64,000 bases of DNA from Phaeosaccion multiseriatum (lineage: Eukaryota; Protista; Ochrophyta, other classes), in NCBI GenBank assembly GCA_965112735.1, contig OZ218965.1:186001-250000 (forward strand), read 5' to 3'. How positions within the stretch are numbered: position 1 is the stretch's first letter; the number at the start of each line of letters is the position of its first letter. The position numbers and the translations under genes were made by a program. Below, piece by piece: positions 23,001 through 63,111 of this stretch. Under the pieces are notes generated by a model that saw only the letters and a list, made by a program, of their open reading frames with translations, searched no databases and was not told where the DNA came from.

Positions 23001-26000
23001 CTGGTTTGGAGTCCGCCGGACGATTTGGAAGGCGCTGAGCTAAAGCCGTTCCTTGAAATGCTCCGGCACGGCGCTTCGAAGTCCACGGCGCTCCTTGTAG
23101 CGAATCAATGCGACCGGTGGGAGGAGGCTCAGGGCGATTTGAAGGCACACTGTGGGCGTATGCACGCGCATGTGAAGGAGGAGCTGCGGGAGGGGCGCAT
23201 AGCGTTGGGGGAAGAAGTACACATGACGAGCTGCAAGGAGGAGGAAGGGCGGCGGGAGAAGGAGCTGAACGTGTTGGTGGAGACGTTAATGGGCCTAGGC
23301 CAGACGTTCGTAATGGGTCCCTTGCTCGAGAAAGCAGTGACCCTGGTGGGCGACATGGCAGAGAAGCACATCTTCCTGACAATGAGTGAAGTGGAAGAAG
23401 CCTGGAAGGTGAAGCTGCAGGAGGACGGAGTCGAAGACGAGGACAAGGAGCTCGCGGATGTGATGTTCCAGTGCGGAGTCAAAATGCTGTAAGTACGGGG
23501 GGGCTTCGGGGCGAGTGCGTGCGGAATTGAGCGCGCCTATGGGCTGGGTATGGTTAAGACTCTCAAGGTTTTGTTGGCGTGATGACGGTTCGGAACAAGG
23601 CCAAAGCTTATATATTGAGCCCGAGGCAAGAGGGAACGTAAGCACCCGTGGGGGGCGGGGGTAGCTACATCGCTTTCCCGTGCCTCTCTCATTGTATGTA
23701 TCTCTCGGTGGCGTGCAGGGAAAGGAACGGAAGACTTGTGGTGGCTGGAGACGTGGAGAAAGGTGCAGCCGTTGTTCTTACGGAGGCGGCCTTGTTTTCC
23801 CAGTTGATCAGTCCGCTCCTGACTCCGGCCGGTGACATCATTACCGACGGTGGTGAAGTGCTACTGGGTCGCAACAAGGTGTGTGTGTGTGCGTGTGCTT
23901 GAGGGAGATGGCAAAGAAAGAGAGGAATCAATAGAAGTTGGCCAGAGTTTAGTGATGTTGTGTCGTCCGTCTGACATGCCTCCCCCCTTGTCCACACGTT
24001 TCTCTCTGTTTGCCTCCATCTGCCTTATCCTCTGCATTGTGCTTTATTTGTGCCCCCCACCGAAGGGACTTCTGACACCCGCACTGAAGCCGAAGCGACA
24101 AGTGGACGGCGCCTATGGACTTGAACTGGACAGGAATGCTGCCAACAAACTCAAGAAGGATGGGGTGCTGACGAGTGGTTTTGCCGGATCGGTCTGGAAC
24201 GCTGTTCTTGTTCGTCACGGGGGGGGCGGGGGAAGGACTTTCGACCAACAACACGTGAGGGCTCTGCTGGGAAGGTTGGTGGACCTGGGCATCATTTTTG
24301 AGAAGGCTGAGCACGATAACGCCCCGGGAGGGGTCAATGGTGGTGGCACTGCTGCCAAGGAGCAAGAGCTCCAATTCGTGGTCTCCCTCCGCATGCCAGA
24401 TGCGATGGACAGCTCGAACGAGCGAGCGCAGAAATTAAAAAAAGCGGCAGATGATATCAGTCAGAATATGAAGGAAGGAGAGTACTTGAAGCAGGTGTCC
24501 CTCAAGCTGGAGCGCCCCCCTTCCCCCGGGACCATTGCCAGGCTGGTGTCTACTCTCTCCACCAAGGGACTCGGTGAGGTGGCGGTTGGCTGGAGGCAAG
24601 GGGCGTTGTTCGTCGATGCCCAACAAGCGTACATGGCCTTCGTCAGCTATGACTGGACGGAGCAACGCTTGTACCTGAAGGTGGCTGGTCAGTGGGAAGA
24701 AGGGGAGAAGCAGGTGAGGAAGAGGAAAGGGCGTCATATGCGTGGCCTGATGTACTCACCGTGCCGTCACTCTGACTCTCCAAGTTTTGCTTTTCCTCGT
24801 TTTTATTTGCACTTCGTCAACACTGCATCCACCAAGTGCGACTCTTTCCCGACCGTTGCGATGGGCATGCTGCTCCGGCACACGGTCCGCCATCTCTCCT
24901 CCCACAAGTGCTCGTGGAAAGAAGTGTACGTGACCAAGGATCCCCTGAACGAAAAGTGGGGGCCGCTCTGTGAGGTAAGAGAGAGGAGGGGGGGGTTGTT
25001 GGTTGTACACACCTTGCTTGTTTAGTTAACAGTTGTCGAGGCTTCTCTCGTGCCGGATAAGTGTTGCTCTCAGCTTGCGTGCGGCTCACATACATCATAA
25101 CCTGTGTGTTTTGGGACGGAACAGGGAGACCTTCAGGAATTCGGGTGTGTGCTGGATCCATCGCGGAAAGCTGATGCAGGCACAAACGAGCGGGGCCTGC
25201 TGTCTGAATATGATGTCGAGCGGCTGATCGCTACACCCGTCTTGAGCCCCCGGTGGGCGCCGCCGACTCTGGCCACGAAGTGCTTCAGAGGCGAGTGGAA
25301 GACTGTGTGCGACAAGTTTGAAGGGGAGGCTTTCGTTACACTCCGGACTTGTGTGAAAGGTTTCGAGAAATACCAGGTACGAGGCTCAGTAGGTCTGTGT
25401 TGACGACTTTGCTCTCCGGGCAAAGCTTTGTGTTCTGATGCCGACGAATTCCTCTTGTCCCTCTCTTGTCTCAAAGGAATCCCTGCAGAAGGCGCGAGAC
25501 GGGCTTCCCAACGTCGAGACTATTGAAATGAGCGACGGTAAGGGGTACCAAGTCTTCTTGAGCCACGCCGGGCCGGAGAAGCGGGGCATTGTGTATCTGC
25601 TTCACAGATGTCTGTGGCAGAGAGGAATTCCGACTTTCTTGGACGAGGAAAGCCTGCAGGCAGGAGACCGCGCCGACCACAAGATGCTCCACGTTGCCCG
25701 CACCGCCCCGATTGGCGTGGTTGTGCTGAGTCCGTCTTTTGTGTGCCGAGAGTGGCCTCTTGAGGAGATGCAAATCTTCATGGACAGGGCGGAGGAGGAG
25801 GAAGCGGCGCTGGTGCCGCTATTCTTCGGGCTGACGGTTGAGGAATGCTGGGACACGGGCAAATTAGAAGATAACCATCCCGGCGTGAAGAAGACATGGG
25901 GAGAGTGGAGCAAAGGGGAGGGAGGGGATTGGGATTGGCTTGAGAAGGACAAGTTCAAGACAGCGGACGAGCTTGCGAAGGACCTGCTGGGGCGTGTGGG

Positions 26001-26109
26001 TACACACACGGGTCTCCGCGATGACCACCAAGAAGATCTGTTTGCTTTCGCCAAAAGAGTGGCGAACAAGGTGGAAAGGGTATTGACGACGTTACATTCC
26101 AAGTCGTAA
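20094..26109 (+). CDS. ROCO-TIR protein copy A: LRR N-cap + 12 LRR units + ROC GTPase + COR-like + TIR
   Basis: N-cap exon 20094-20274 (DILKALFDATSGSAW...W.TDASLENWFGV). LRR exons start at 20515, 20664, 20813, 20978, 21092, 21231, 21388, 21537, 21685, 21833, 21981, 22134. Exon 22392-22623 has GNPLQYPP and G1 GPTTVGKT|S. Exon 22799-23488 has G2 STVGV, G3 FFDCGGQQDYH, G4 VANQCD, G5 TSCK. COR-like exons 23719-23878, 24066-24713, 24837-24974, 25125-25376. TIR exon 25477-26109 (YQVFLSHAG...FLDEESL...VVVLSPSFVCREWPLEE). Confidence 0.9.
20515..22205 (+). repeat. LRR cassette array A: 12 units of 72-nt exon + ~77-nt conserved intron
   Basis: Exon consensus G-SIPPELGxLxxLxxLxLxxNxLT-G. Intron consensus GTGAGTGGTACGCACACCCGTTCGCGTCCCTTTCACTTGATATGAGTGTGACCAAAGAACTTTCCTCCCATCCGCAG. 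Confidence 0.95.
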
Positions 26110-26286
26110 CCCTAAGCACTCTTTGTCTGCTTACTCCCCAGCCACCCTCACTCAGAGAGAGAGAGAGAGGCGCCAAAGCTTTTTACGGGCAGAACGAGAG
26201 TAAAATATATTGAAACAATGCCTCGGGTTTCCGATTGGGCATGAACGAGTGGCCTACTCCACAGTCCCCCCTTAACACCTGTTGAG

Positions 26287-26560
26287 GGTATCCACCTTGT
26301 ACGAAGGATCTTAAATCACTCCTTCTGCTTCTGTGTAAGACGGACAGGCAAGCCCCCCCCCCCTCCCCTCCCCTCCCCTCTCGAGTCTCTCGCGTCTTCC
26401 GCCGCTCTGCTCGGCAAGCGAGTGAGCGGTAGCGCTATTTTGTATTCTGCACATGCTGGAGAGCATAAGGACCGCCATCGTCGTGTTCAGGCCCTTGCTG
26501 CTTCTGTTGTATCACCACCTGCTGCTACTGCTGCTGCTGCTGCTGTATCACCAACTGCCA
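26287..26560 (+). repeat. ~0.3-kb non-coding direct repeat (also ~31965-32280, ~40777, ~46498, partial ~54227-54480)
   Basis: Shared GGTATCCACCTTGTAYGAAGGATCTTAAATCA...GTGTAAGACGGACAGGCAAGCCCC...GAGCGGTAGCGCTATT...GCACATGCTGGAGAGCA. Confidence 0.85.
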
Positions 26561-27503
26561 TCGTCGTGCCCAAGGCTCTTGATGAGGCGTCCGAGGCCAA
26601 AGCCGCAAAAGCGCCGCAGCAACACACCGAGTGTCCCCTGAGCCTGCCCCTGACCTTGACCTTGACCCTGACCCTGACCTGGAGCATGGGCCTGACCCTG
26701 ACCCTGACCCTGACCTTGACCCTGACCCTGACCCTGGCCCTGACCCCGAGCATGAGCCTGGCCCTGAGCATGAGCCTGGCCCTGACGTTGACCCTTGGGC
26801 CCTGACGTTGGCCCTTTGGCCCTGACGTTGGCCCTTGGGCCCTGATCGCTCAGATACGCTCCAGGGGCTTGATGCCGAGCAGCTCGAAGCATGTGCCCAT
26901 GGCTCGCTTCGTGGCTTGGCACAGCAGGAGGCGCCCGTTCTGTATCACCAACACGGGAGCGTGGGGGGTGGGGGTGTCAGGACAGCGGGTAGGGGGTTTC
27001 AGGACAGTGGGTGGGAGGTGCCCATTTCGTATCACCGACGGGACAGGGCCATGCATACAGCAGCAGTTGGTGATACAGCGTCAGAGACATTGTGTCACAG
27101 GCATTATCTTAGAGTCAGTCTAGCACCCACAGCAAGTGCCCCACTCAATCCCTCACATACTCACTCACTCACGGACTTAATCACCCACCCACTCACCCAC
27201 CCACTCACTAGTAACTGACTGACTCACTCACTCACTTCCTCACTGCCTCACTTACTCACTCACTGCCTCACTCACGCACGCACTCACTCCCTCACGCACG
27301 TACTCACTCAATCACTCACGCAATCACTCACTCACGCACGTACTCACTCACTCACTCACGTCCACTGCCATCCACTGCCATCCCTCCCTCTCCGGGCGAT
27401 GGGGCGCTCTCTCGTTTGTTCTGCTCCTGCCCCTTGCCATCCGCTGCCATCCTCCCTCTCTGACCCCCCAACGCCCCTGCTCTCCCCCCCCTCCTGTCCT
27501 CAG

Positions 27504-29006
27504 CTGGACCCCGACATGCTCAAGATGTCGTTTCCCGAGTGGAAGCTTTACCTCAAGACGTGCCCCAACAACGATGCCGGCAACAGGACTAGGCTCGAGA
27601 GCGGCTTCATGATCGAAATTGCACAGGTCAGTCAGTCAGTCGGTCAGTCGGTCAGTCAGTCAGTCAGTCAGTCAGTCAGTCAGTCAGTCAGTCAGTCAGT
27701 CAGTCAGTCAGTCAGTCAGTCAGTCAGTCAGTCAGTCAGTCAGTCAGTCAGTCAGTCAGTCGGTCGGTCAGCCAGTAAGTCAGTCAGTTCTCGAGTCTGT
27801 CAGTCAGTCAGTGAATCAGTCAGTCAGTGAGTCAATCTGTCAATACGTTGGTCAGCCAGCGCTGTCAGTAGCGCAGTCAGTGACACGCCTCCCTGTCCTG
27901 ACACATTGCTCTGTACCCGCTGTCCTGACACCTTGCATTGTACCCGCTGTCCTGACACCTTGCATTGTACCCGCTGTCCTGACACCTTACACTGTATCCG
28001 CTGACCCCAAGCTTGACCCCGTGACATTGACATTGACATTGACATTGACATTGACATTGACATTGACATTGACATTGACATTGACATTGACATTGCCGCT
28101 CTCTACCCCCTGCCTCGTGCGTGCTCAGGAGGTGGCTATGGAGAGGCAGAAGAACGTGTGGGTCGATGGCAGCCTACGGGATGCAGAGCGGTATGAGGTG
28201 CGTGCGTGCGTGCGTGCGTGCGTGCGTGTGTGTGTGTGTGGGGTCGCCTGGGATGAGGGCTGCGCACTCACCCCGCCACAGGGGGAGGGAAAGATGGACA
28301 TGCAGGTAGAGAAAGAGAGAGGGAGAGAAAGAGAGCGAGAGAGAGAGAGCGAGAGAGCGAGAGAGAAAGAAAGAGAGAGAGAGAGAGAGAGAGCCAGAGA
28401 GAGAGAGAAAGAAAGAGAGCCAGAGAGAGAGAGAAAGAAAGAGAGAGAGAGAGAGAGAGCCTTCCGTCTGCAGACAGAAGCGCATTGGCCCCTTCTGACA
28501 GAGCGTGAGTATGTGCGTGTGTGTGTATGTGTGTGTGTGTATTTGTGCCCGCGCAGATCGTGTTCCGACAGATCCGCTTGAAGCGCCCCCACTACCGCAT
28601 CGCCATTCTCTACGTGTTCGCCGACCGCGAGTGTGTGTTTCGAAGGGCCAAGGAGCGCGGCGAGCAGACGGGCCGTTTCGTGCCCGAGGAGGACATCGAG
28701 GACTCGCTGCAGAAGGTGCCCCTCACCGTAGAGAAGCTCATGCACAAGGTGAGTGAAACTGTCGGCAGCAGCGGGGCGGGCAGGGCCATGCACGGGTGGG
28801 GTTGTTTGGGTATACACAGGTTGGGCATACACAGGTTGGGCATACACAGGTTGGGCCACCGAGGAGTGATAAGCACTATAGGGGGAGAGTAAGCCCTTCC
28901 CACCAAAGCCCTTCCCGCCAAAGCTCTTACCGCCATGACCCTTCCTGCCGTGACGTTTCATGACGTATGTCTCTGTCGCTCCACTGCCGAATGCCGCGCC
29001 CGCGGG

Positions 29007-29053
<47 letters not shown>

Positions 29054-29512
29054 TTGTGTGTATGCGTGTGTGTGCGTGTGTGTGTGTGTGTGCGTGTGTG
29101 TGTGTGTGCATGCGCAGGTGGGCTTCGTGGCGTGGATCGAGAACTCGGAGAATAAGGACACGTCCACCTCGGACCCCAAGCTCGTCAAGTACATGGAGAG
29201 CGAGAGCCCAGACCAGAGTACAGACCAGAGCAGCCAGCCGGGCAGTGACACGCGGCAGAGCGCAGGCAGACAGGTGCGGGGGGGGGCGCCGCGAGAGGGG
29301 TCAGTCAATCAGTCAGTCAGTCAGTCAGTCAGTCAGTCAGTCAGTCAGTCAGTCAGTCAGTCAGTCAGTCAGTCAGTCAGTCAGTCAGTCAGTCAGTCAA
29401 GTCTCTCAGTCAGTCAATCAGTCTGTCAGTCAGTCAGTCAGTCAGTATCAGTCAGTCAGTCAGTCAATCAGTGAAGTCAGTCAATCAGTGAAGTCAGTCA
29501 GTCAGTCAGTCA

Positions 29513-29551
<39 letters not shown>

Positions 29552-29588
29552 AGTCAGTCAGGCCCTCAGTCAGTCAGTCAGTCAGTCA

Positions 29589-29623
<35 letters not shown>

Positions 29624-31797
29624 AGTCAGTCAGGCCCTCAGTCAGTCAGTCAGTCAGTCAGTCAGCCAGTCAGTCAGTCAATCAATCTGTCAGTCAGTCA
29701 GTCCCTGAGTTCCTCAGTACCGTCATGCGTGCTCTGCTGTGCTCTGATGAAGTGTACTCTCTCCCTCTCTATATCAGAAGCCTCCCCCACCCCCCCCCCC
29801 CTCTCTTCCTCTCCCTTTCTCTCTCCTTCTCCTCACGCCCCCCCCCTTGTGTGTGTCCACCGTCTTCCTCTCGCGGCAGTGGGTGATGAACGAGAGGGGC
29901 AGCTGGGAGGAGATTTCGGACCGATTTGCCATACTCGCGGAGCTCGATCAGGTGAGAAGTGGTACAGCGCAATAAGCTAATGAGTGTCTGGCCGTGGCCC
30001 CCAGTAGCTACTAAGGGTTGGAAAGGGAAAAAGGGATACCCAGTGAGCACTAAGGGGCATTTATTGACTTAATTGTCAGCACCAAGGGAGGCACAGGGGG
30101 GTCCTGACACGAGGCACCAGGGTGTGGGGGAGGGGGGTGTCCTCGGTGAACCTTCTCAGCACGTGCTGCTCGGGAGGGAGGTTGACCAAATTCCTCTTTT
30201 TGGTGCTGGTGTCAGCTCTCTCATGCCCATACACATGTTTCTGCTCCGTGAAACGCTGGTTGGTGTCAGGACCCGGCCACATGGCGGTGGTGGCTGAAGG
30301 AGCAAGTGGCCAAGAACGACGTCGTGGTGTTCGGCAAGAGCTACTGCTCCTTCAGGTTTGTGCTCTCGTTGTTGGCCATTCGGCACTCCTTGTGGAGAAG
30401 GTCTTTTCCTCTCGCCTGGCTGCCTCCTGATCTCGTCCTCCTCAAGTCCTCCTTAGTATCTGTGCCCACCACCCTTACTCCCACTCCCTCCTCTCGACGC
30501 CCCCCCTCCCTGTCGCAGCAACCGCTTGTTGGACTTGTTGCACAACCTTAAGGTGGAGTTCACTGTGGTGCAGGTGAGAGCTTCTCGGGAGGGGCAGGCA
30601 GGCAAGCGAATGGGGAGATAGGGAGCGACAATGTAGAGAGAGAGAGCCCTTGGGATCGATGCAACAGATGACAACTGTCTGGACCACCAACGCCTCTCTT
30701 CCGGCCGTGGGGTGCCATCGTCTTCGCTCACACGCCTGAATAGTTCTCTCTCTTTCTGCCTTACTCATGTGTCTCTCTATCCCTCTCTGTCTGCCTCTCT
30801 GTTTGTCACTCTCTCTCTCCTTCTCTCGTCCGCTCTCTTTTGGCAGTTCGACGAGCTCCCCGGGGGGGGTGTCCCCCTGCAGCTCGAGCTCACCAAGATG
30901 ACTGGCATCGCCACAGGTAAGGCATATGGGTCATCGGTGCTAAGGCATATGGGCCATCAGTGCTAAGGCATATGGGCCATCGGTGCCCCCCGAGGCCCGA
31001 TGAAAGGAGAGGGTGTCCGGTGTGTGGTGTCGAACCCCCCCCCCTGACGCTCCCTCCTCCCTCCTCCCCCCTCTCTTGTCCAGTGCCCCAGCTCTTCAGC
31101 CACGGGCGCTGTTTGGGCGGCTGCAGCTCCTGTTTCGCGTTGCACGAGAAGGGTCTTCTCGAGCTCGCACTCAGCGGACCCCTCACAGCGCAAAGCCCTC
31201 CACAGGAGGGAAGTGGGGGGGGGGGGGGTGGTGAGGAGGAAGCTCAGACTGAGGCAAAGAAAGTCCATCAGCAGCTCCCCCTCTCCAAGCCGCAGTCACG
31301 AGAACCTCGCTCTTCTTGCGAGCAGTCCTTCCGTAGAGGCGCTGATGGGGGTGGGGGCGGCAGGAGGGGCAAGGGCATTGCATGGGTCAGGGGCAGGGGC
31401 ACCCACCGGGGGACCGACGCAGGAAGGGAGGCGGGCAACAGTGGGGCCGTACGGGGGGGAGACGAAGCAGTGGGTGGTACAGCAGTTGGGCATACAGCAC
31501 CTCTCAATGGACAACGACGAGAGCCTCCTTCCGAGCGGGGAGCGCTTGGAGACGCCGCAGCAGGGGAAGCACGAGAGTGTCGTCCCCAGCGGCGACAGGC
31601 GTATAGGCAGGCAGTCCAGCGGGAGGTGTATGGGCCGGGGTGGTCATCAGCTGCAGTGCCTGCCGCCCGTTAAGGAGGAACGGCCGGCAGGTCAGCGAAC
31701 GCCCACCCCCGTAAGCCAACAAACGCCCTCCTCCCCAGTAAGCCAACAAACGCCCTCAGGTCAACCCACCAGCTCGGACGAGGCCCGGCCCAAGTGA
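27504..31797 (+). pseudogene. 5'-truncated copy 1 of the zeta-kinase/glutaredoxin gene (no start, no Walker A exon)
   Basis: Inverted homologue of window 1-2190, starting at exon LDPDMLK (27504). Continues into Grx exons SYCSF|SNRLLDLL...TGIAT|VPQLFSHGRCLGGC. Splice sites intact. One extra G in the poly-G near 31215 relative to copy 2. Confidence 0.75.
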
Positions 31798-33819
31798 GGG
31801 CCCAAGAATCAATAGTAAAAAGGAGGTTGGGAAGTCTCGAGCAGAGGCGTATGGGCATATTAGAGCAGAGGCGTATGGGCATGGCGGAGCCGTGGGGCGC
31901 GGACGGCGGCCTTGGTCGCGCGGGCTCAGGCGAAGGGGGTGGGGGATGTGTAGATAAGCGAACTGGTATCCACCTTGTATGAAGGATCTTAAATCAAAAA
32001 TCAAAGAGAACGAACACATTCAAACTGAACTACTCCTTCTGTGTAAGACGGACAGGCAAGCCCCCCTCCCCTCTCGAGTCTCTCGCGTCTCTCGCGTCTT
32101 CCGCCGCTCTGTTCGGCAAGCGAGTGAGCGGTAGCGCTATTTTGTATTTTGCACATGCTGGAGAGCAGGAGGACCGCCATCCTCGTGTTCAGGGCCCTTG
32201 CTGCTTCTGGTTTATCACCACCTGCTGCCACTGCTGCTGTATCACCAAGTGCTGCTTCTGTTGTATCACCAACTGCTGCTGCTGCTGCTGCTGCTGTTGA
32301 ATGCTGCGCATCCGAGAGTACCCTGGCCGCCAACGTTGTCGCTGCGCCGAGGGCTACGGAGAGGCCGGGTGTGTGCAGTGCGAAGTCGCTCGGGTCCTGG
32401 CCTGTATCTGTAGTGCCCCCTTTGCGACATTGATATCGGCGTCATCGACATTGATATCGGCATCATCGACATTGATATCGGCATCATCGACATTGATATC
32501 GGCATCTCTGGCCCTCGCCACTGCGCTGCTGGGGACCTGTACTGCCCCCTTTGCGGCGCATCACCTTCCACTCCCCCCCCCGCTACATCCTTGTAAGCCG
32601 AAAAGGGGGAACAGCTGATGTGTGTCGTCCATCTTGTCCTTCCTGCATGTCTGTGTCTAGGAGGTCGAGCAGCACCTCCAGCACCCCGACTCGCTGCCGC
32701 AGCGCCCTGCCGTCAAATCGCTGATGACCCTGCGCTTCCCCTTCTGCTCAACTTCCCCCTAGGGGTTTGGCCACATCTCACTGCCGGCCTGCTCGTCCAG
32801 AAAAGCATGATGAACTACAGCCAGTCGCCCTCTCGTCGAGCAGAAAGTCTTTGATCCTTCTATTCATAATCAAGGCAGCGTGCTCATCGACGCTCTGGTG
32901 GCTCTCCCCGGTGACTGCCTTCTGCCTTGCAGCTGCGAGCTGACCCTTCGAGAAACCCTTTCACCCTCTGCATCGCACCTCTGCGTCCACCCCACTACTG
33001 CTGGGGCGTCGTTCCTGGCGCCAGCAACGACTTGCTCTCGTGCGTGGCCGGTGACGCGCTTATCCTCCAGCACCTCATCTATCCTGGCTGGCCGGGTCCA
33101 TGTGCAGGGCAGCGAGACCTCCACCTGGGGTGGCGTACAGCTCGCAAGCCACCCAACGACCGCATCACCCGCGTACGAGGGCCCGCCACTGGACCTCTGT
33201 ACCCACAGCCTTTACCACTGCCGCCTTCCCCGCAGCCCAGACCCTCCGACTCTCTGCCTCAGCACAGGGGAGGGGTAAGCCAGGCCGCCCCGCAGCGCCC
33301 GAAACGTGGAATACGCCCTATCCGGGAGCTTGGCCTGCGCCGCTGCCTTCTTCTCGTTCGCCGACGCCTCTGGCTGCTCCCAGCCAGATGCGGGCTCAAT
33401 GCCCTGTGCCAGCTGCAAGCTTGGAGGGGTGACAGCAGTGCTTCCCTTGTGCATGCTGAGGGCGATTGCAAGATTCTCCTGCGCTATCACGCCTCGCCTC
33501 CGCCTGTCGAGCCGACGCACAATGTGCTCCTCCAATCAATGCCGGCTTCGTAAACGTGGCCCGCCTCCTTCCGTTTTTCCTCCCCGCTGCCTGTCTTTCA
33601 TCTCCCCGAGAGTAATCCCGTTCGCACCAGCCTTGTTAGCAATAATGCTTCTCTATCTGTCTCACCCTTTTTTTTCCCGCGTCACGGTCACGTCCATTTG
33701 TGAACTTCATGGATTCAAAGCTCGCTCACTTTTTATGCTGACGTATCCTGACGCCGTGCAGACTAAACACTGAGACCAGGGCGAGCTTTTATCAGTGTTT
33801 GCGTGTTACGAAGGTTACG

Positions 33820-36800
33820 ATGTCTATTGTCCTCGAGGATCAGCGTAGAATACTCACAGCCGTCTTTCTCGCGACGAGCGGACCCGCTTGGTCTTACAAG
33901 GCAGGATGGAACACGGACGCTTCTTTGGAGAACTGGGTCGGAGTGCGCGTTGAGAATGACTATGTGGTGGAGCTTGACCTCGGAAGAATCGGCCTCAAAG
34001 GTAGGAGAGACGTGATTATGGTTGTTGCGCCTTACGTCCTGAAGAGTACGTCGTATTCTAAAGTTTTTCCAGAATGTTGGCAATGTTCTCTCCTTTTATT
34101 TGTTCTTTTATTCATGCAACAACACGTGATCGGTCTAGAATATTCGGGAAGGACGAAGCAAAGAGGGGCGAGAGATGTGTGAGGCAGGGGCATGATGTGG
34201 TAGTCCAGCGACTCGTTCGCGTCCCTTTCACTTCGTGTACCAAAGAGCTCCCCCCGCTCCGCAGGGAGGATTCCACCAGAGCTTGAAGGTCTTCAGAACC
34301 ATGAGAGACTGTCCCTCAACAACAATCAGCTCACTGATGAGTGGCACGAGCACCCGTTCGCGTCCCTTTCACTTGATATGAGTATGACCAAGGAACTTTC
34401 CTCCCATCCGCAGGGAGCATTCCACCCGAGCTTGGAAGTCTTCAGAACCTGACGGTGCTCAGCCTGTTGCGCAACCAGCTCTCCGGTGAGTGATACGCAC
34501 ACCCGTTCGCGTCCCCTTGACTTGATATGAGTGTGACCAGAGAACTCTCCTCCCATCCGCAGGGAGCATTCCACCCGAGCTTGGAAGTCTGGAGAAGCTT
34601 GAGAGACTGAACCTCTCCGACAACGCGCTCACTGGTGAGTGGTACGCACACCCGTTCGCGTCCCTTTCACTTGATATGAGTGTGACCAAGGAACTTTCCT
34701 ACCATCCGCAGGATGCATTCCAAGGGAGCTTGGACGCCTGGAGAAGCTGAAGGTATTAATCCTCTCCTACAGCAACGTCACTGGTAAGTGGTATGCGGAC
34801 CTGTTCGCGTCCCTTTCACTTGATATGAGTGTGACCAAGGAACTTTCCTACCATCCGCAGGATGCATTCCAAGGGAGCTTGGAAGTCTGGAGAAGCTTGA
34901 GCACTTGAGTCTCGCTGGCAGCAAGCTCACTGGTAAGTGGTACGCACACCCGTTCACGTCCCTTTCGCTTGATATGAGTTTGACCAAAGATCTTTCCTCC
35001 CATCCGCAGGGAGCATTCCACCCGAGCTTGGAAGTCTGAAGAAGCTGAAGGTTTTGAAACTCTCCCACAACAAGCTCACTGGTGAGTGGTACGCGTACCC
35101 GTTCGCGTCCCTTTTACTTGATATGAGTATGACCAAAGAGCTTTCCTCCCATCCGCAGGGAGCATTCCACCCGAGCTTGGACGCCTGGAGAAGCTGGAGG
35201 AATTGCGCCTCTCCCACAACAAGCTCACTGGTAAGTGTTATGCGAACCCGTTCGCATCCCTTTTACTTGATATGAGTATGACCAAAGAACTTTCCTCCCA
35301 TCCGCAGGGAGCATTCCACCCGAGCTTGGAGGTCTGCAGAACCTTAGGCTGCTGGACCTTGACGGCAATCTGCTCACCGGTGAGTGGTACGCATACCGTT
35401 CGCGTACCCCTGAATCGTTCGCGTCCACTTGACTTGATATTAGTCTGGCTGAAGAACTTCCCCACGTCTCAGGGAGTATTCCGCCGCAACTTGGACAGCT
35501 GTCAAACCTTCGAGAACTTTGCCTCGACATAAACAACCCCTCTCATTTGATAAGTATGACCGAAGAGCTCTCTCCTCCCATTGCAGGGAGTATTCCACCC
35601 GAGCTTGGAGGTCTTCAGAACCTTGAGATGCTGCAACTCAGCCTCAATAAGCTCAATGGTGAGTGAGTGGGACGCGAACCCCTTTCATTTGATATGAGTA
35701 TGGCTGACCTTTCCTCCCATTGCAGGGAGCATTCCACCCGAGCTTGGAGGTCTTCAGAACCTTGAGAGACTGTACCTCTTCACCAACTTCCTCACTGGTG
35801 AGTGGGACGCGAACCCGTTTGCGTGTTCGCGTCCCTTTCGCTTGATATCAGTGTGACCAAAGAACTTTCCTCCCATCCGCAGGGAGCATGCCGCCGCAAC
35901 TTGGGCAGCTTTCAAACCTTCGAGAACTATCGCTTTACAACAATAATCTAGAAGGTGAGTGGTGCGCGAACCCGTTCCCGACCCTTTGACTTGATATGAG
36001 GGTGACCAAAGAACTTTCTACCCATCCGCAGGGAGCATTCCACCCGAGCTTGGAGGTCTTCAGAACCTTACGGGACTGTCCCTCGACTTCAATAAGCTCA
36101 CTGGTGAGTGTAAGCACACCCGTTCGCGTCCCTTTCGCTTGATAGTCTTATAGCAAAGAACTTCCCCTCCGCCCCACAGGGAGCATTCCAAGGGAGCTTG
36201 AAAGTCTGGAGAACATTGAGCAATTGAGCCTCTACGACAACAAGCTCACTGGTGAGTGGTACGCACACCCGTTCGCGTCCCTTTCGCTTGATAATCGTGT
36301 GACAACGAACTTCCCTCCTCTCCGCAGGGATTATTCCACCCGAGATTGGAAGTCTTCAGAAGCTTGGGTATTTGAACCTCTCCGGCAACAAGCTCACTGG
36401 TGAGTGGTACGCACACCCTTTCGCGTCCCTTTCGCTTGATAGTCGTATGACAAAAGAACTTTCCCCATATCTCAGGGAGCATTCCGCCGCAACTTGGACA
36501 GCTGTCAAACCTTCAACAACTTTGGCTCAACGAGAACAGTCTAGAAGGTAGGTGGTACGCGCACCCGTTCGCGTCCCTTTCACTTGATATGAGTATGACC
36601 AAGCAACCAACGTTCGTCCCATCCGCAGGGAGCATTCCATCCGAGCTTGGAAGTTTGGAGCAGCTCAGGCGCATCTACCTCAACAACAATAAGCTCACTG
36701 GTGAGTGGTAGCATGCCCGCTCGCGTCCCTTCCACTTGGTGCTTTGGTACGGAACATGGCGAGATTTTTGATGAGAGCCAATTCTGAGTGGTCCGGCTCC

Positions 36801-39800
36801 GTGGTGACGGGAAGTAAGCCCCTACCGCCTTAAAAGACCACCGCCCATCCTCCGCCGCTCTACTCGCGTCGTGCCCTTGCCTGCAGGCTTTGCAACGGGC
36901 ACGAGTGAAGATTGGATACTCAACATTTGCGGTGAGGGCGTGACTGGCTACACTAACTTTCAGGTGCATGGTAACCCGCTGCAGTACCCGCCATTTGGGG
37001 TGTTGGAGCAAGGACGGCTCATGACGCAAAAGTACTTCCAAGACTTGCGCAAGGGTCGACGGGAAGTAAGGAGCCTCAAGGTCATGCTCTTTGGACCGAC
37101 AACTGTAGGCAAGACCAGGTACGGTATACCCTCTTCGTCACAATGTCCCTTCTAGCCAACTACGATGGGCGACAGAGGAGTTCGAGAGAACGGGAGAGGA
37201 GGGGAATTTTTCTGTCGTCATCACCCGCTGCTCTTGATTAGCTTCCAACATGCCTCCCCCCCCCCCGACGTTTCGTCCCTTGCTTGTGTCAGTTTGATGC
37301 GTAGCATCATAGAAGGGCGGCCCACAGCAACGGAGAACAGCAAGAAGCCGTCGACGGTCGGTGTTCACGTCCGGGGCTGCGAGCTGGAGAGACCGGGGCG
37401 TTCGGTTATGTCGTGTCGCTTCTTCGACTGTGGTGGTCAGCAAGACTATCACGGCCTCAGCAGCATGTTTCTCACTGAAGGAGCGGCCTACCTGCTGGTT
37501 TGGAGTCCGCCGGACGATTTGGAAGGCGCTGAGCTAAAGCCGTTCCTTGAAATGCTCCGGCACGGCGCTTCGAAGTCCACGGCGCTCCTTGTAGCGAATC
37601 AATGCGACCGGTGGGAGGAGGCTCAGGGCGATTTGAAGGCACACTGTGGGCGTATGCACGCGCATGTGAAGGAGGAGCTGCGGGAGGGGCGCATAGCGTT
37701 GGGGGAAGAAGTACACATGACGAGCTGCAAGGAGGAGGAAGGGCGGCGGGAGAAGGAGCTGAACGTGTTGGTGGAGACGTTAATGGGCCTAGGCCAGACG
37801 TTCGTAATGGGTCCCTTGCTCGAGAAAGCAGTGACCCTGGTGGGCGACATGGCAGAGAAGCACATCTTCCTGACAATGAGTGAAGTGGAAGAAGCCTGGA
37901 AGGTGAAGCTGCAGGAGGACGGAGTCGAAGACGAGGACAAGGAGCTCGCGGATGTGATGTTCCAGTGCGGAGTCAAAATGCTGTAAGTACGGGGGGGCTT
38001 CGGGGCGAGTGCGTGCGGAATTGAGCGCGCCTATGGGCTGGGTATGGTTAAGACTCTCAAGGTTTTGTTGGCGTGATGACGGTTCGGAACAAGGCCAAAG
38101 CTTATATATTGAGCCCGAGGCAAGAGGGAACGTAAGCACCCGTGGGGGGCGGGGGTAGCTACATCGCTTTCCCGTGCCTCTCTCATTGTATGTATCTCTC
38201 GGTGGCGTGCAGGGAAAGGAACGGAAGACTTGTGGTGGCTGGAGACGTGGAGAAAGGTGCAGCCGTTGTTCTTACGGAGGCGGCCTTGTTTTCCCAGTTG
38301 ATCAGTCCGCTCCTGACTCCGGCCGGTGACATCATTACCGACGGTGGTGAAGTGCTACTGGGTCGCAACAAGGTGTGTGTGTGTGCGTGTGCTTGAGGGA
38401 GATGGCAAAGAAAGAGAGGAATCAATAGAAGTTGGCCAGAGTTTAGTGATGTTGTGTCGTCCGTCTGACATGCCTCCCCCCTTGTCCACACGTTTCTCTC
38501 TGTTTGCCTCCATCTGCCTTATCCTCTGCATTGTGCTTTATTTGTGCCCCCCACCGAAGGGACTTCTGACACCCGCACTGAAGCCGAAGCGACAAGTGGA
38601 CGGCGCCTATGGACTTGAACTGGACAGGAATGCTGCCAACAAACTCAAGAAGGATGGGGTGCTGACGAGTGGTTTTGCCGGATCGGTCTGGAACGCTGTT
38701 CTTGTTCGTCACGGGGGGGGCGGGGGAAGGACTTTCGACCAACAACACGTGAGGGCTCTGCTGGGAAGGTTGGTGGACCTGGGCATCATTTTTGAGAAGG
38801 CTGAGCACGATAACGCCCCGGGAGGGGTCAATGGTGGTGGCACTGCTGCCAAGGAGCAAGAGCTCCAATTCGTGGTCTCCCTCCGCATGCCAGATGCGAT
38901 GGACAGCTCGAACGAGCGAGCGCAGAAATTAAAAAAAGCGGCAGATGATATCAGTCAGAATATGAAGGAAGGAGAGTACTTGAAGCAGGTGTCCCTCAAG
39001 CTGGAGCGCCCCCCTTCCCCCGGGACCATTGCCAGGCTGGTGTCTACTCTCTCCACCAAGGGACTCGGTGAGGTGGCGGTTGGCTGGAGGCAAGGGGCGT
39101 TGTTCGTCGATGCCCAACAAGCGTACATGGCCTTCGTCAGCTATGACTGGACGGAGCAACGCTTGTACCTGAAGGTGGCTGGTCAGTGGGAAGAAGGGGA
39201 GAAGCAGGTGAGGAAGAGGAAAGGGCGTCATATGCGTGGCCTGATGTACTCACCGTGCCGTCACTCTGACTCTCCAAGTTTTGCTTTTCCTCGTTTTTAT
39301 TTGCACTTCGTCAACACTGCATCCACCAAGTGCGACTCTTTCCCGACCGTTGCGATGGGCATGCTGCTCCGGCACACGGTCCGCCATCTCTCCTCCCACA
39401 AGTGCTCGTGGAAAGAAGTGTACGTGACCAAGGATCCCCTGAACGAAAAGTGGGGGCCGCTCTGTGAGGTAAGAGAGAGGAGGGGGGTTGTTGGTTGTAC
39501 ACACCTTGCTTGTTTAGTTAACAGTTGTCGAGGCTTCTCTCGTGCCGGATAAGTGTTGCTCTCAGCTTGCGTGCGGCTCACATACATCATAACCTGTGTG
39601 TTTTGGGACGGAACAGGGAGACCTTCAGGAATTCGGGTGTGTGCTGGATCCATCGCGGAAAGCTGATGCAGGCACAAACGAGCGGGGCCTGCTGTCTGAA
39701 TATGATGTCGAGCGGCTGATCGCTACACCCGTCTTGAGCCCCCGGTGGGCGCCGCCGACTCTGGCCACGAAGTGCTTCAGAGGCGAGTGGAAGACTGTGT

Positions 39801-40601
39801 GCGACAAGTTTGAAGGGGAGGCTTTCGTTACACTCCGGACTTGTGTGAAAGGTTTCGAGAAATACCAGGTACGAGGCTCAGTAGGTCTGTGTTGACGACT
39901 TTGCTCTCCGGGCAAAGCTTTGTGTTCTGATGCCGACGAATTCCTCTTGTCCCTCTCTTGTCTCAAAGGAATCCCTGCAGAAGGCGCGAGACGGGCTTCC
40001 CAACGTCGAGACTATTGAAATGAGCGACGGTAAGGGGTACCAAGTCTTCTTGAGCCACGCCGGGCCGGAGAAGCGGGGCATTGTGTATCTGCTTCACAGA
40101 TGTCTGTGGCAGAGAGGAATTCCGACTTTCTTGGACGAGGAAAGCCTGCAGGCAGGAGACCGCGCCGACCACAAGATGCTCCACGTTGCCCGCACCGCCC
40201 CGATTGGCGTGGTTGTGCTGAGTCCGTCTTTTGTGTGCCGAGAGTGGCCTCTTGAGGAGATGCAAATCTTCATGGACAGGGCGGAGGAGGAGGAAGCGGC
40301 GCTGGTGCCGCTATTCTTCGGGCTGACGGTTGAGGAATGCTGGGACACGGGCAAATTAGAAGATAACCATCCCGGCGTGAAGAAGACATGGGGAGAGTGG
40401 AGCAAAGGGGAGGGAGGGGATTGGGATTGGCTTGAGAAGGACAAGTTCAAGACAGCGGACGAGCTTGCGAAGGACCTGCTGGGGCGTGTGGGTACACACA
40501 CGGGTCTCCGCGATGACCACCAAGAAGATCTGTTTGCTTTCGCCAAAAGAGTGGCGAACAAGGTGGAAAGGGTATTGACGACGTTACATTCCAAGTCGTA
40601 A
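33820..40601 (+). CDS. ROCO-TIR protein copy B (chimera: C-type 5' half, A-type 3' half; 17 LRR units)
   Basis: N-cap 33820-34000. LRR exons from 34265 (donor-dead), 34414, 34563, 34712, 34861, 35010, 35159, 35308 (hybrid), then the A4-A12 equivalents 35473...36629-36700. ROC/COR/TIR translations match copy A. Stop at 40601. Confidence 0.85.
34265..36700 (+). repeat. LRR cassette array B (17 units)
   Basis: Same 72-nt exon / ~77-nt intron periodicity; exact 149-bp period over the first 8 units. Confidence 0.95.
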
Positions 40602-41993
40602 CCCTAAGCACTCTTTGTCTGCTTACTCCCCAGCCACCCTCACTCAGAGAGAGAGAGAGGCGCCAAAGCTTTTTACGGGCAGAACGAGAGTAAAATATAT
40701 TGAAACAATGCCTCGGGTTTCCGATTGGGCATGAACGAGTGGCCTACTCCACAGTCCCCCCTTAACACCTGTTGAGGGTATCCACCTTGTACGAAGGATC
40801 TTAAATCACTCCTTCTGCTTCTGTGTAAGACGGACAGGCAAGCCCCCCCCCCCTCCCCTCCCCTCCCCTCTCGAGTCTCTCGCGTCTTCCGCCGCTCTGC
40901 TCGGCAAGCGAGTGAGCGGTAGCGCTATTTTGTATTCTGCACATGCTGGAGAGCATAAGGACCGCCATCGTCGTGTTCAGGCCCTTGCTGCTTCTGTTGT
41001 ATCACCACCTGCTGCTACTGCTGCTGCTGCTGCTGTATCACCAACTGCCATCGTCGTGCCCAAGGCTCTTGATGAGGCGTCCGAGGCCAAAGCCGCAAAA
41101 GCGCCGCAGCAACACACCGAGTGTCCCCTGAGCCTGCCCCTGACCTTGACCTTGACCCTGACCCTGACCTGGAGCATGGGCCTGACCCTGACCCTGACCC
41201 TGACCTTGACCCTGACCCTGACCCTGGCCCTGACCCCGAGCATGAGCCTGGCCCTGAGCATGAGCCTGGCCCTGACGTTGACCCTTGGGCCCTGACGTTG
41301 GCCCTTTGGCCCTGACGTTGGCCCTTGGGCCCTGATCGCTCAGATACGCTCCAGGGGCTTGATGCCGAGCAGCTCGAAGCATGTGCCCATGGCTCGCTTC
41401 GTGGCTTGGCACAGCAGGAGGCGCCCGTTCTGTATCACCAACACGGGAGCGTGGGGGGTGGGGGTGTCAGGACAGCGGGTAGGGGGTTTCAGGACAGTGG
41501 GTGGGAGGTGCCCATTTCGTATCACCGACGGGACAGGGCCATGCATACAGCAGCAGTTGGTGATACAGCGTCAGAGACATTGTGTCACAGGCATTATCTT
41601 AGAGTCAGTCTAGCACCCACAGCAAGTGCCCCACTCAATCCCTCACATACTCACTCACTCACGGACTTAATCACCCACCCACTCACCCACCCACTCACTA
41701 GTAACTGACTGACTCACTCACTCACTTCCTCACTGCCTCACTTACTCACTCACTGCCTCACTCACGCACGCACTCACTCCCTCACGCACGTACTCACTCA
41801 ATCACTCACGCAATCACTCACTCACGCACGTACTCACTCACTCACTCACGTCCACTGCCATCCACTGCCATCCCTCCCTCTCCGGGCGATGGGGCGCTCT
41901 CTCGTTTGTTCTGCTCCTGCCCCTTGCCATCCGCTGCCATCCTCCCTCTCTGACCCCCCAACGCCCCTGCTCTCCCCCCCCTCCTGTCCTCAG

Positions 41994-42740
41994 CTGGACC
42001 CCGACATGCTCAAGATGTCGTTTCCCGAGTGGAAGCTTTACCTCAAGACGTGCCCCAACAACGATGCCGGCAACAGGACTAGGCTCGAGAGCGGCTTCAT
42101 GATCGAAATTGCACAGGTCAGTCAGTCAGTCGGTCAGTCGGTCAGTCAGTCAGTCAGTCAGTCAGTCAGTCAGTCAGTCAGTCAGTCAGTCAGTCAGTCA
42201 GTCAGTCAGTCAGTCAGTCAGTCAGTCAGTCAGTCAGTCAGTCAGTCAGTCAGTCAGTCAGTCAGTCAGTCAGTCAGTCAGTCAGTCAGTCAGTCAGTCA
42301 GTCGGTCGGTCAGCCAGTAAGTCAGTCAGTTCTCGAGTCTGTCAGTCAGTCAGTGAATCAGTCAGTCAGTGAGTCAATCTGTCAATACGTTGGTCAGCCA
42401 GCGCTGTCAGTAGCGCAGTCAGTGACACGCCTCCCTGTCCTGACACATTGCTCTGTACCCGCTGTCCTGACACCTTGCATTGTACCCGCTGTCCTGACAC
42501 CTTGCATTGTACCCGCTGTCCTGACACCTTACACTGTATCCGCTGACCCCAAGCTTGACCCCGTGACATTGACATTGACATTGACATTGACATTGACATT
42601 GACATTGACATTGACATTGACATTGACATTGACATTGCCGCTCTCTACCCCCTGCCTCGTGCGTGCTCAGGAGGTGGCTATGGAGAGGCAGAAGAACGTG
42701 TGGGTCGATGGCAGCCTACGGGATGCAGAGCGGTATGAGG

Positions 42741-42772
<32 letters not shown>

Positions 42773-43554
42773 TGTGTGTGTGTGTGGGGTCGCCTGGGAT
42801 GAGGGCTGCGCACTCACCCCGCCACAGGGGGAGGGAAAGATGGACATGCAGGTAGAGAAAGAGAGAGGGAGAGAAAGAGAGCGAGAGAGAGAGAGCGAGA
42901 GAGCGAGAGAGAAAGAAAGAGAGAGAGAGAGAGAGAGAGCCAGAGAGAGAGAGAAAGAAAGAGAGCCAGAGAGAGAGAGAAAGAAAGAGAGAGAGAGAGA
43001 GAGAGAGCCTTCCGTCTGCAGACAGAAGCGCATTGGCCCCTTCTGACAGAGCGTGAGTATGTGCGTGTGTGTGTATGTGTGTGTGTGTATTTGTGCCCGC
43101 GCAGATCGTGTTCCGACAGATCCGCTTGAAGCGCCCCCACTACCGCATCGCCATTCTCTACGTGTTCGCCGACCGCGAGTGTGTGTTTCGAAGGGCCAAG
43201 GAGCGCGGCGAGCAGACGGGCCGTTTCGTGCCCGAAGAGGACATCGAGGACTCGCTGCAGAAGGTGCCCCTCACCGTAGAGAAGCTCATGCACAAGGTGA
43301 GTGAAACTGTCGGCAGCAGCGGGGCGGGCAGGGCCATGCACGGGTGGGGTTGTTTGGGTATACACAGGTTGGGCATACACAGGTTGGGCATACACAGGTT
43401 GGGCCACCGAGGAGTGATAAGCACTATAGGGGGAGAGTAAGCCCTTCCCACCAAAGCCCTTCCCGCCAAAGCTCTTACCGCCATGACCCTTCCTGCCGTG
43501 ACGTTTCATGACGTATGTCTCTGTCGCTCCACTGCCGAATGCCGCGCCCGCGGG

Positions 43555-43599
<45 letters not shown>

Positions 43600-44048
43600 T
43601 TGTGTGTATGCGTGTGTGTGCGTGTGTGTGTGTGTGTGCGTGTGTGTGTGTGCATGCGCAGGTGGGCTTCGTGGCGTGGATCGAGAACTCGGAGAATAAG
43701 GACACGTCCACCTCGGACCCCAAGCTCGTCAAGTACATGGAGAGCGAGAGCCCAGACCAGAGTACAGACCAGAGCAGCCAGCCGGGCAGTGACACGCGGC
43801 AGAGCGCAGGCAGACAGGTGCGGGGGGGGGCGCCGCGAGAGGGGTCAGTCAATCAGTCAGTCAGTCAGTCAGTCAGTCAGTCAGTCAGTCAGTCAGTCAG
43901 TCAGTCAGTCAGTCAGTCAGTCAGTCAGTCAGTCAAGTCTCTCAGTCAGTCAATCAGTCTGTCAGTCAGTCAGTCAGTCAGTATCAGTCAGTCAGTCAGT
44001 CAATCAGTGAAGTCAGTCAATCAGTGAAGTCAGTCAGTCAGTCAGTCA

Positions 44049-44087
<39 letters not shown>

Positions 44088-44124
44088 AGTCAGTCAGGCC
44101 CTCAGTCAGTCAGTCAGTCAGTCA

Positions 44125-44159
<35 letters not shown>

Positions 44160-46330
44160 AGTCAGTCAGGCCCTCAGTCAGTCAGTCAGTCAGTCAGTCA
44201 GCCAGTCAGTCAGTCAATCAATCTGTCAGTCAGTCAGTCCCTGAGTTCCTCAGTACCGTCATGCGTGCTCTGCTGTGCTCTGATGAAGTGTACTCTCTCC
44301 CTCTCTATATCAGAAGCCTCCCCCACCCCCCCCCCTCTCTTCCTCTCCCTTTCTCTCTCCTTCTCCTCACGCCCCCCCCCTTGTGTGTGTCCACCGTCTT
44401 CCTCTCGCGGCAGTGGGTGATGAACGAGAGGGGCAGCTGGGAGGAGATTTCGGACCGATTTGCCATACTCGCGGAGCTCGATCAGGTGAGAAGTGGTACA
44501 GCGCAATAAGCTAATGAGTGTCTGGCCGTGGCCCCCAGTAGCTACTAAGGGTTGGAAAGGGAAAAAGGGATACCCAGTGAGCACTAAGGGGCATTTATTG
44601 ACTTAATTGTCAGCACCAAGGGAGGCACAGGGGGGTCCTGACACGAGGCACCAGGGTGTGGGGGAGGGGGGTGTCCTCGGTGAACCTTCTCAGCACGTGC
44701 TGCTCGGGAGGGAGGTTGACCAAATTCCTCTTTTTGGTGCTGGTGTCAGCTCTCTCATGCCCATACACATGTTTCTGCTCCGTGAAACGCTGGTTGGTGT
44801 CAGGACCCGGCCACATGGCGGTGGTGGCTGAAGGAGCAAGTGGCCAAGAACGACGTCGTGGTGTTCGGCAAGAGCTACTGCTCCTTCAGGTTTGTGCTCT
44901 CGTTGTTGGCCATTCGGCACTCCTTGTGGAGAAGGTCTTTTCCTCTCGCCTGGCTGCCTCCTGATCTCGTCCTCCTCAAGTCCTCCTTAGTATCTGTGCC
45001 CACCACCCTTACTCCCACTCCCTCCTCTCGACGCCCCCCCTCCCTGTCGCAGCAACCGCTTGTTGGACTTGTTGCACAACCTTAAGGTGGAGTTCACTGT
45101 GGTGCAGGTGAGAGCTTCTCGGGAGGGGCAGGCAGGCAAGCGAATGGGGAGATAGGGAGCGACAATGTAGAGAGAGAGAGCCCTTGGGATCGATGCAACA
45201 GATGACAACTGTCTGGACCACCAACGCCTCTCTTCCGGCCGTGGGGTGCCATCGTCTTCGCTCACACGCCTGAATAGTTCTCTCTCTTTCTGCCTTACTC
45301 ATGTGTCTCTCTATCCCTCTCTGTCTGCCTCTCTGTTTGTCACTCTCTCTCTCCTTCTCTCGTCCGCTCTCTTTTGGCAGTTCGACGAGCTCCCCGGGGG
45401 GGGTGTCCCCCTGCAGCTCGAGCTCACCAAGATGACTGGCATCGCCACAGGTAAGGCATATGGGTCATCGGTGCTAAGGCATATGGGCCATCAGTGCTAA
45501 GGCATATGGGCCATCGGTGCCCCCCGAGGCCCGATGAAAGGAGAGGGTGTCCGGTGTGTGGTGTCGAACCCCCCCCCCTGACGCTCCCTCCTCCCTCCTC
45601 CCCCCTCTCTTGTCCAGTGCCCCAGCTCTTCAGCCACGGGCGCTGTTTGGGCGGCTGCAGCTCCTGTTTCGCGTTGCACGAGAAGGGTCTTCTCGAGCTC
45701 GCACTCAGCGGACCCCTCACAGCGCAAAGCCCTCCACAGGAGGGAAGTGGGGGGGGGGGGGTGGTGAGGAGGAAGCTCAGACTGAGGCAAAGAAAGTCCA
45801 TCAGCAGCTCCCCCTCTCCAAGCCGCAGTCACGAGAACCTCGCTCTTCTTGCGAGCAGTCCTTCCGTAGAGGCGCTGATGGGGGTGGGGGCGGCAGGAGG
45901 GGCAAGGGCATTGCATGGGTCAGGGGCAGGGGCACCCACCGGGGGACCGACGCAGGAAGGGAGGCGGGCAACAGTGGGGCCGTACGGGGGGGAGACGAAG
46001 CAGTGGGTGGTACAGCAGTTGGGCATACAGCACCTCTCAATGGACAACGACGAGAGCCTCCTTCCGAGCGGGGAGCGCTTGGAGACGCCGCAGCAGGGGA
46101 AGCACGAGAGTGTCGTCCCCAGCGGCGACAGGCGTATAGGCAGGCAGTCCAGCGGGAGGTGTATGGGCCGGGGTGGTCATCAGCTGCAGTGCCTGCCGCC
46201 CGTTAAGGAGGAACGGCCGGCAGGTCAGCGAACGCCCACCCCCGTAAGCCAACAAACGCCCTCCTCCCCAGTAAGCCAACAAACGCCCTCAGGTCAACCC
46301 ACCAGCTCGGACGAGGCCCGGCCCAAGTGA
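41994..46330 (+). pseudogene. 5'-truncated copy 2 of the zeta-kinase/glutaredoxin gene
   Basis: Duplicate of 27504-31797; last exon open to ...DEARPK* at 46330. Confidence 0.75.
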
Positions 46331-54031: not shown

Positions 54032-55307
54032 CCTTCTGCAGCGTCGGTGAATCTTCGCTAGCTAACTCTGACTCACACTCTGACTCACACTCTTTGTCTG
54101 CTTACTCCCCAGCCACCCTTGGTGAGAGAGAGAGACGCCAAAGCTTTTTATGGACAGAACGAGAGTAAAATATATTAAAACAGTGCCTCGGGTTTCCGAT
54201 TGGGAGTGAACCACGAGTGGCCTTCTAATCACTCCTTCTGTGTAAGGCGGACAGGCAAGCCCCCCTCCCCTCCCCTCCCCTCTCGAGTCTCTCGCGTCTT
54301 CCGCCGCTCTGTTCGGCAAGCGAGTGAGCGGTAGCGCTATTCTGCACATGCTGGAGAGCATGAGGACCGCCATCGTCGTGTTCAGGCCCTTGCTGCTTCT
54401 GTTGTATCACCACCTGCTGCTACTGCTGCTGCTGCTGTATCACCAACTGCTGCTGCTGCTGCTGTACCACCAACTGCCATCGTCGTGTCCAAGGCTCTTG
54501 TGAGGCGTCCGAGGCCAAAGCCGCAGAAGCGCCGCAGCACCACACCGATTGTCTCCTGAGCCTCGCCCTGACCTTGACCCGGACCCTGACCCTGACCCTG
54601 ACCCTGACCCCGACCCTGAGCATGACCTGACCCTGACCCTGACCCTGACCCTGACCCTGACCTTGACCCTGGCCCTGACCCTGACCCTGACCCCGAGCAT
54701 GAGCCTGGCCCTGACGTTGGCCCTTTGGCCCTGATCGCTTAGATACGCTCCAGGGGCTTGATGCCGAGCAGCTCGAAGCATGTGCCCATGGCTCGCTTCG
54801 TGGCTTGGCACAGCAGGAGGCGCCCGTTCTGTATCACCAACACGGGAGCGTGGGGGGTGGGGGTGTCAGGACAATGGGTAGGGGGTTTCAGGACAGTGGG
54901 TGGGAGGTGCCCGTTTTGTATCACTGACGGGACAGAGCCATGCATACAGCAGCAGTTGGTGATACAGCGTCAGAGACATTGTGTGACAGGCATTGTGGTA
55001 GAGTCAGTCTAGCACCCACAGCAAGTGCCCCACTCAATCCCTCTCATACTCACTCACTCACTCACGCACGTACTCACTCAATCTCACGCACTCACTCACG
55101 CACGTACTCACTCAATCTCTCACCCACTCACTCACTCACGCACGTACTCGCTCACTCACTCACGTCCACTGCCATCCACTGCCATCCCTCCCTCTCCGGG
55201 CGATGGGGCGCTCTCTCGTTTGTTCTGCTCCTGCCCCTTGCCATCCACTGCCATCCTCCCTCTCTGACCCCCCAACGCTCCTGCCCTCCCCCCCCTCCTG
55301 TCCTCAG

Positions 55308-55882: not shown

Positions 55883-55914
<32 letters not shown>

Positions 55915-60337: not shown

Positions 60338-60373
<36 letters not shown>

Positions 60374-63063: not shown

Positions 63064-63111
<48 letters not shown>

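Follow-up and report, generated by a model that had tools for sequence, protein, structure and literature searches.

A chimeric LRR-ROC-TIR gene arising by out-of-register exchange inside an LRR exon between tandem algal paralogs

Three tandem LRR-ROC-TIR genes

The window, by which we mean the whole 64-kb stretch of DNA that was analyzed, is intron-rich eukaryotic sequence with a GC content of 58%, and three genes, termed A, B, and C, lie in tandem within it. They share one layout, in which a cap exon is followed by a series of 72-nt LRR exons, a ROC exon, a region at the position of a COR domain, and a last exon encoding a TIR domain.

20094-26109, plus strand: parent gene A, with a cap exon, 12 LRR exons (20515-22205), ROC, COR-position region, and TIR; open frame of 1241-1279 aa
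33820-40601, plus strand: chimeric gene B, with a C-type upstream region and cap exon, units C1-C7, a hybrid unit, units A4-A12, and an A-type stretch from ROC to TIR
48353-54031, plus strand: parent gene C, with a cap exon, 9 LRR exons (48798-50062), ROC, COR-position region, and TIR

Each 72-nt exon encodes one 24-residue LRR, and the introns between these exons measure about 77 nt in A, B, and C alike. The arrays comprise 12, 17, and 9 units in A, B, and C, respectively; every one of the 38 units starts at an AG acceptor, follows the pattern GxxPxxLxxxxxLxxLxLxxNxLx, and sits in the same phase, while four are without a donor. Once the dead units were skipped in the spliced models, a frame check gave open frames in all three genes, including 1337-1375 aa in B and 1183 aa in C with unit 1 skipped in both.

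Pfam, homology, and structure searches were made exon by exon rather than with the joined protein. The ROC exon matched Pfam Roc with an E value of 2.6e-8, above the cut-off, and its closest solved structures were those of the LRRK2 ROC domain; the P-loop, GPTTVGKT, is encoded by the exon before it. In a search of protein representatives, the ROC exon weakly matched proteins of Ectocarpus and Sphacelaria, among others (E about 1e-6 to 1e-7). The COR-position exons, each searched singly with the joined protein outside the search, gave no Pfam match for a COR domain. The TIR exon matched Pfam TIR (E 2e-13) and aligned to TIR structures from plants and bacteria, in which WCLDE pairs with its WPLEE, the catalytic glutamate being kept; by fold and by this glutamate, it would qualify as an NADase-type effector domain, its activity being a prediction. 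A homologous-protein search with the TIR exon alone returned no match at E 0.001, a result that is silent on full-length kin. Judged from their sequences, the three genes appear to be brown-alga-type LRR-ROC receptors with a C-terminal TIR domain, and family resemblance makes B a candidate immune receptor.

Exon shuffling, inactivated exons, and intergenic recombination have been published for brown-algal ROCO genes (PMC3341825, PMC11378527). The LRR-ROCO genes of Ectocarpus resemble those described here in devoting one 72-nt exon to each 24-residue LRR (type I), in carrying dead exons within the array, and in occurring as tandem paralogs that differ in unit number and have recombined both within and between genes (PMC3341825, PMC11378527). 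The genes in the window differ, however, in having homogenized introns of about 77 nt, in being without exons on the opposite strand, and in ending in a TIR domain, whereas the Ectocarpus LRR proteins are without one. Among the contigs of the four sequencing runs considered below, hundreds from other loci matched the conserved intron and exon-start sequence, indicating that the cassette family is large genome-wide.

A single switch inside an LRR exon

Gene B is a chimera of C and A, and both of its parents are intact in the window. The change from one to the other falls inside the eighth LRR exon of B.

20813-20884, plus strand: parent exon A3, template of the 3' part
49841-49912, plus strand: parent exon C8, source of the 5' part
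35308-35379, plus strand: hybrid LRR exon B8, 72 nt, the first 24 nt from C8 and the last 44 nt from A3
35332-35335, plus strand: switch interval GTCT, the last identical bases ahead of five straight A3/C8 mismatches; contigs of four runs begin at 35332

The maximal exact match between B and C extends over 4120 bp (31216-35335 = 45749-49868) and that between A and B over 1935 bp (20837-22771 = 35332-37266), and the two overlap by the four bases GTCT. At every informative site of the exon and of the intron before it, B agrees with C as far as 35331 and with A from 35336 on, so that a single switch separates two sides that are each identical to a different neighboring paralog. Chance cannot account for this pattern, because the A and C exons are only 83-91% identical, and a short gene conversion was ruled out since the C match extends upstream across the whole spacer. 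The first-pass annotation had quoted the sequences of A3, B8, and C8 and had described B as matching C before 35332 and A after 35335; the quoted exon sequences proved correct, and the exact matches and informative sites bear out the description.

Together with the chimera, the intervening DNA was duplicated head to tail, with both breakpoints in aligned homologous sequence.

20837-35335, no strand assigned: first copy of the duplication, 14,499 bp
35332-49868, no strand assigned: second copy of the duplication, 14,537 bp

The two copies differ at 12 places, of which 11 are lengths of homopolymers or microsatellites and one is a substitution, synonymous-looking, with G at 28688 and A at 43236. 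One substitution in 14.5 kb implies a very young event; the 11 length differences are probably consensus errors, and dating by these indels was dropped for that reason. The earlier proposal that the 14.5-kb tandem duplication and the hybrid exon arose together in one out-of-register event is supported.

Four public runs contain the locus, all from one sample that is probably the source of the assembly, and their contigs were compared over 34750-35950. All four contain a 176-bp contig corresponding to 35332-35507, aligned from its own first letter. A contig of this kind begins where the assembly graph branches, and 31-mer unitigs were simulated with and without the duplication. With it, the simulation yielded a 176-bp unitig at 35332-35507 that was present in two copies and had two predecessors (A from gene A and G from gene B); without it, a 217-bp single-copy contig started inside the 5' part of A3. 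The observed contig start therefore equals that of the junction model to the base in four runs, which supports the junction. Contigs flanking the junction were about twice as deep as most paralog contigs (medians in run X1, 999 versus 492), contig depth not being equal to copy number. This secondary, supporting result, for which paralog contigs were the reference, agrees with the twofold depth anticipated over the duplicated segment and suggests that the event is fixed in the sample. A contig across 35306-35361 was not among the contigs listed. We conclude with high confidence that the junction and the duplication are real in the DNA of this sample.

An assembly artefact, in which the sample holds only A and C (perhaps as two alleles) and B consists of reads joined across similar LRR units, is improbable. 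In favor of an artefact, 11 of the 12 copy differences are simple-repeat lengths, as is typical of consensus error, and one of these alters the reading frame of a passenger exon. In a diploid alga, the shallower contigs could belong to single haplotypes and the deeper ones to a normal single locus, and a paralog elsewhere that shares the 31-mer of A3 at 20836-20866 and then diverges could also start a contig at 35332. However, the closest other unit in the window is 8 mismatches away from this 31-mer, and a join at the 43-bp tract shared by A3 and C8 would leave A bases at 35321-35331, where B has C bases at four sites. The agreement of the contig start with the junction, to the base and in four runs, likewise argues against an artefact, as does the lack of any alternative letters over 1.2 kb. 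A second sample under the same organism label (run X5) contained 0.06 of the locus words, reflecting either a small data set or a strain with a strongly different LRR cluster.

Homology at the switch and the route of exchange

The switch interval closes a block in which C8 and A3 are closely similar.

35278-35335, plus strand: C8/A3 homology block, with a 43-bp perfect tract at 35278-35320 (intron end and exon start) followed by 11/15 identical bases; the last 56 bp are 52/56 identical

The perfect tract lies 11 bp upstream of GTCT and is the joint-longest exact tract between the A and C arrays, while 3' of GTCT, the five straight mismatches between A3 and C8 are followed by 8/20 identical bases. 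In this window, 52/56 or better is reached by 6 of the 108 A/C unit pairs, A3/C8 among them. The exchange kept the register of the 149-bp unit, which indicates that it was guided by homology, and pure microhomology end-joining was rejected given an exchange in register inside the 52/56 block. The initial emphasis on a junction with 4 bp of perfect identity was accurate for the overlap GTCT but not for the homology as a whole, as the 43-bp tract and the 52/56 block adjoin it. Nor is a 4-bp junction surprising in itself, since about 60% of random switch points between the A and C arrays fall in runs of 4 bp or fewer.

Very probably, the locus records a very recent tandem duplication that arose when the LRR exon arrays of neighboring paralogs underwent ordinary homeologous recombination. 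The 52/56 block at the intron-exon border, together with the 43-bp perfect tract, may have allowed a DNA end within C8 or a short way past it to pair out of register with A3, which lies 29 kb upstream and could have been on either the same chromatid or its sister. In the segment where C8 diverges, the unpaired tail would then have been trimmed as far as GTCT, the last bases to match, or else branch migration may have stalled at that point; synthesis would have gone on along A3, copying the 14.5 kb again. Such an event would leave the C upstream region and first 7 units fused to the last 9 units and the signaling body of A. Both the repair pathway and the direction of the event are what we infer from the junction. 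In homeologous break-induced replication in yeast, a terminal 5-bp match within flanking homology islands was used in 61% of events after tail clipping, and the bias toward the 3' end was weaker for less diverged partners (PMC4215184). The likeness between that process of template switching and the algal case lies in a junction at a short terminal match that ends a diverged block, with further islands of identity flanking it; the yeast break, however, was induced in a reporter, whereas the algal pathway is read from one natural junction (PMC4215184). Where the junction lies is explained no less well by a non-reciprocal invasion than by a reciprocal crossover, one junction giving the same pattern for both. 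The reciprocal product proposed earlier, a single gene with 4 LRR units, has the expected unit count but is only a possibility, as a non-reciprocal event would never make one; no such gene was seen in the one sample.

Gene B is a chimeric paralog formed by out-of-register homologous exchange, a kind of event known from Rp1-D21 and HNWD. Maize Rp1-D21 is likewise a chimeric immune-receptor gene produced by unequal exchange between tandem paralogs about 90% identical, but Rp1 encodes a CC-NB-ARC-LRR protein with an autoactive phenotype, whereas the algal exchange was out of register within a repeat array and changed the repeat number (PMC4342346). The WD40 hnwd genes of Podospora (het-e, het-r) offer a repeat-array sensor in which fusions of non-equivalent repeats yield chimeric units and changed numbers; these events were experimentally selected and occurred within one gene with intronless repeats, while the algal event joined two genes and duplicated the intervening DNA (PMC2873952). 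In comparison with the Ectocarpus LRR-ROCO genes, in which whole exons were moved, the cut here lies inside an exon, and the event is resolved to 4 bp with its parents intact.

The original brown-algal paper held that LRR exon shuffling was not simple homologous recombination and proposed targeted somatic rearrangement (PMC3341825). Applied to this locus, a targeted (programmed, possibly somatic) rearrangement at a conserved site of the LRR exon, as argued for by Zambounis et al. (PMC3341825), seems to us very improbable. In 14 of 21 units, exon positions 25-28 read GTCT, several exact tracts common to units end at position 23 or 28, and the exchange fell in the array although the gene bodies have longer perfect A/C tracts, up to 105 bp. 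Yet conservation itself drops at position 28 (mean pairwise identity, 0.81 over positions 1-28 versus 0.59 over 29-60), which explains why shared tracts end near there without any special signal. Moreover, no recombination signal or recombinase was seen, 14.5 kb including passenger DNA was duplicated with no new binding face swapped into the unit, the depth suggests an event fixed in the sample, and no somatic recombinant ROCO locus has been reported (PMC11378527). Signal sequences or an enzyme for programmed somatic diversification of the VLR or V(D)J type were likewise not seen, in contigs that drop rare variants and could therefore miss mosaicism. Nothing shows a programmed or somatic rearrangement. 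A broader proposal, that the compact, homogenized intron-exon cassette arrays are mitotic recombination hot spots making TIR-armed receptors in a clonal lineage, with B as one fixed example of a continuing process that arose in vegetative growth, perhaps in culture, strikes us as speculative and rather unlikely. Least credible of all is a real junction that lies on a 14.5-kb circle, released when A3 and C8 of the same chromatid recombined, or that occurs in only part of the culture, and that the assembler threaded into the chromosome: the junction on a circle of this origin would be that of B exactly, and short-read contigs are blind to circle versus tandem copy, but the twofold depth would require about one circle per genome beside an intact A-C locus, one substitution separates the copies, and the reciprocal junction was not seen among the loose ends listed.

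The preferred reading, ordinary homeologous recombination, concerns a single event with an ordinary mechanism, and it bears on how ROCO genes shuffle their LRR exons. A recombinant ROCO locus had, according to a 2024 paper, never been caught (PMC11378527). In the window, the two parents of one such event survive unchanged, and the event can be followed at single-base level. On this reading, ordinary homeologous repair, for which a conserved intron end and exon start serve as guide, can in a single step alter the repeat number, give rise to an additional gene copy, and recombine cassette stacks between genes, with the break inside an exon. The locus also offers a simple assay, in that collapse of the near-identical 14.5-kb direct repeats should occur often enough to be measured and PCR can track the C7-to-A4 junction in clones or strains.

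Composition of gene B and the DNA carried along

The hybrid exon B8 encodes PELGG where A3 has PDLAS and continues with the A3 sequence from there on; its 5' half recurs in A5, A6, and A8. The strand on the concave face of an LRR is the usual ligand surface (PMC11378527), and the variable strand of B8 is wholly that of A3. A new hybrid LRR, as first described, therefore holds for the chimeric exon, but the change is confined to PDLAS to PELGG in the conserved half, and a new binding face in this unit was rejected. The novelty is combinatorial: the C upstream region and first units are stacked on the units and ROC-TIR body of A. B would accordingly be a receptor in which existing binding faces form a new and longer stack that feeds the predicted ROC-TIR output of A. 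A count of 17 units for this receptor is correct, but 15 of them have intact donors, the exceptions being the following.

34265-34338, plus strand: unit B1 (= C1), with donor AT for GT; skipping keeps the frame and intron retention breaks it
35473-35586, plus strand: unit B9 (= A4), in which a deletion of about 35 bp has removed the end of the exon and the donor; the 114 nt that are left are either skipped or continue in frame into the next unit

As intron retention breaks the frame, B1 must be skipped. In A4 (20978-21091) and B9 alike, the reading frame stays open over the 114 nt that extend to the next exon, and the intron remnant can be read as 14 extra residues. The early units of gene C (48798-49465) look degraded, with a dead donor and an L-to-H change in C1 and Ser for the conserved Asn in C4 and C5, and B inherits these units (34265-34932). 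An exact match of 81 bp, spanning intron and exon start, links C4 and C5 (49187-49267 = 49336-49416) and marks an earlier recent exchange or unit duplication in the C array.

The duplicated segment carries part of a further gene.

27435-31800, plus strand: passenger fragment, the 3' part of a zeta-toxin-like kinase/glutaredoxin gene; Zeta_toxin E 4e-4, below the curated cut-off

Between the two copies, a one-base difference in a G run (31215 versus 45749) shifts the frame of the last passenger exon and is probably a consensus error in one of them. The 3' part of this gene lies behind each ROCO-TIR gene (27435-30417, 55239-56282), and a fuller paralog, inverted relative to the fragments and 80-90% identical to them, occupies the start of the window (1-2200, minus strand). 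These kinase/glutaredoxin fragments are a trace of the older duplications that made the cluster. An element of about 215-245 bp occurs at 26322-26536, 32030-32276, and 54231-54477, past the ends of A and C and also ahead of B/C, and sits near the probable edge of the older A/C duplication. Behind C, a local 164-bp tandem duplication (94.5%) at 55734-56089 repeats a small passenger exon, and farther along, at 60043-63430, lies a chlM gene encoding magnesium-protoporphyrin methyltransferase, which fits a photosynthetic host.
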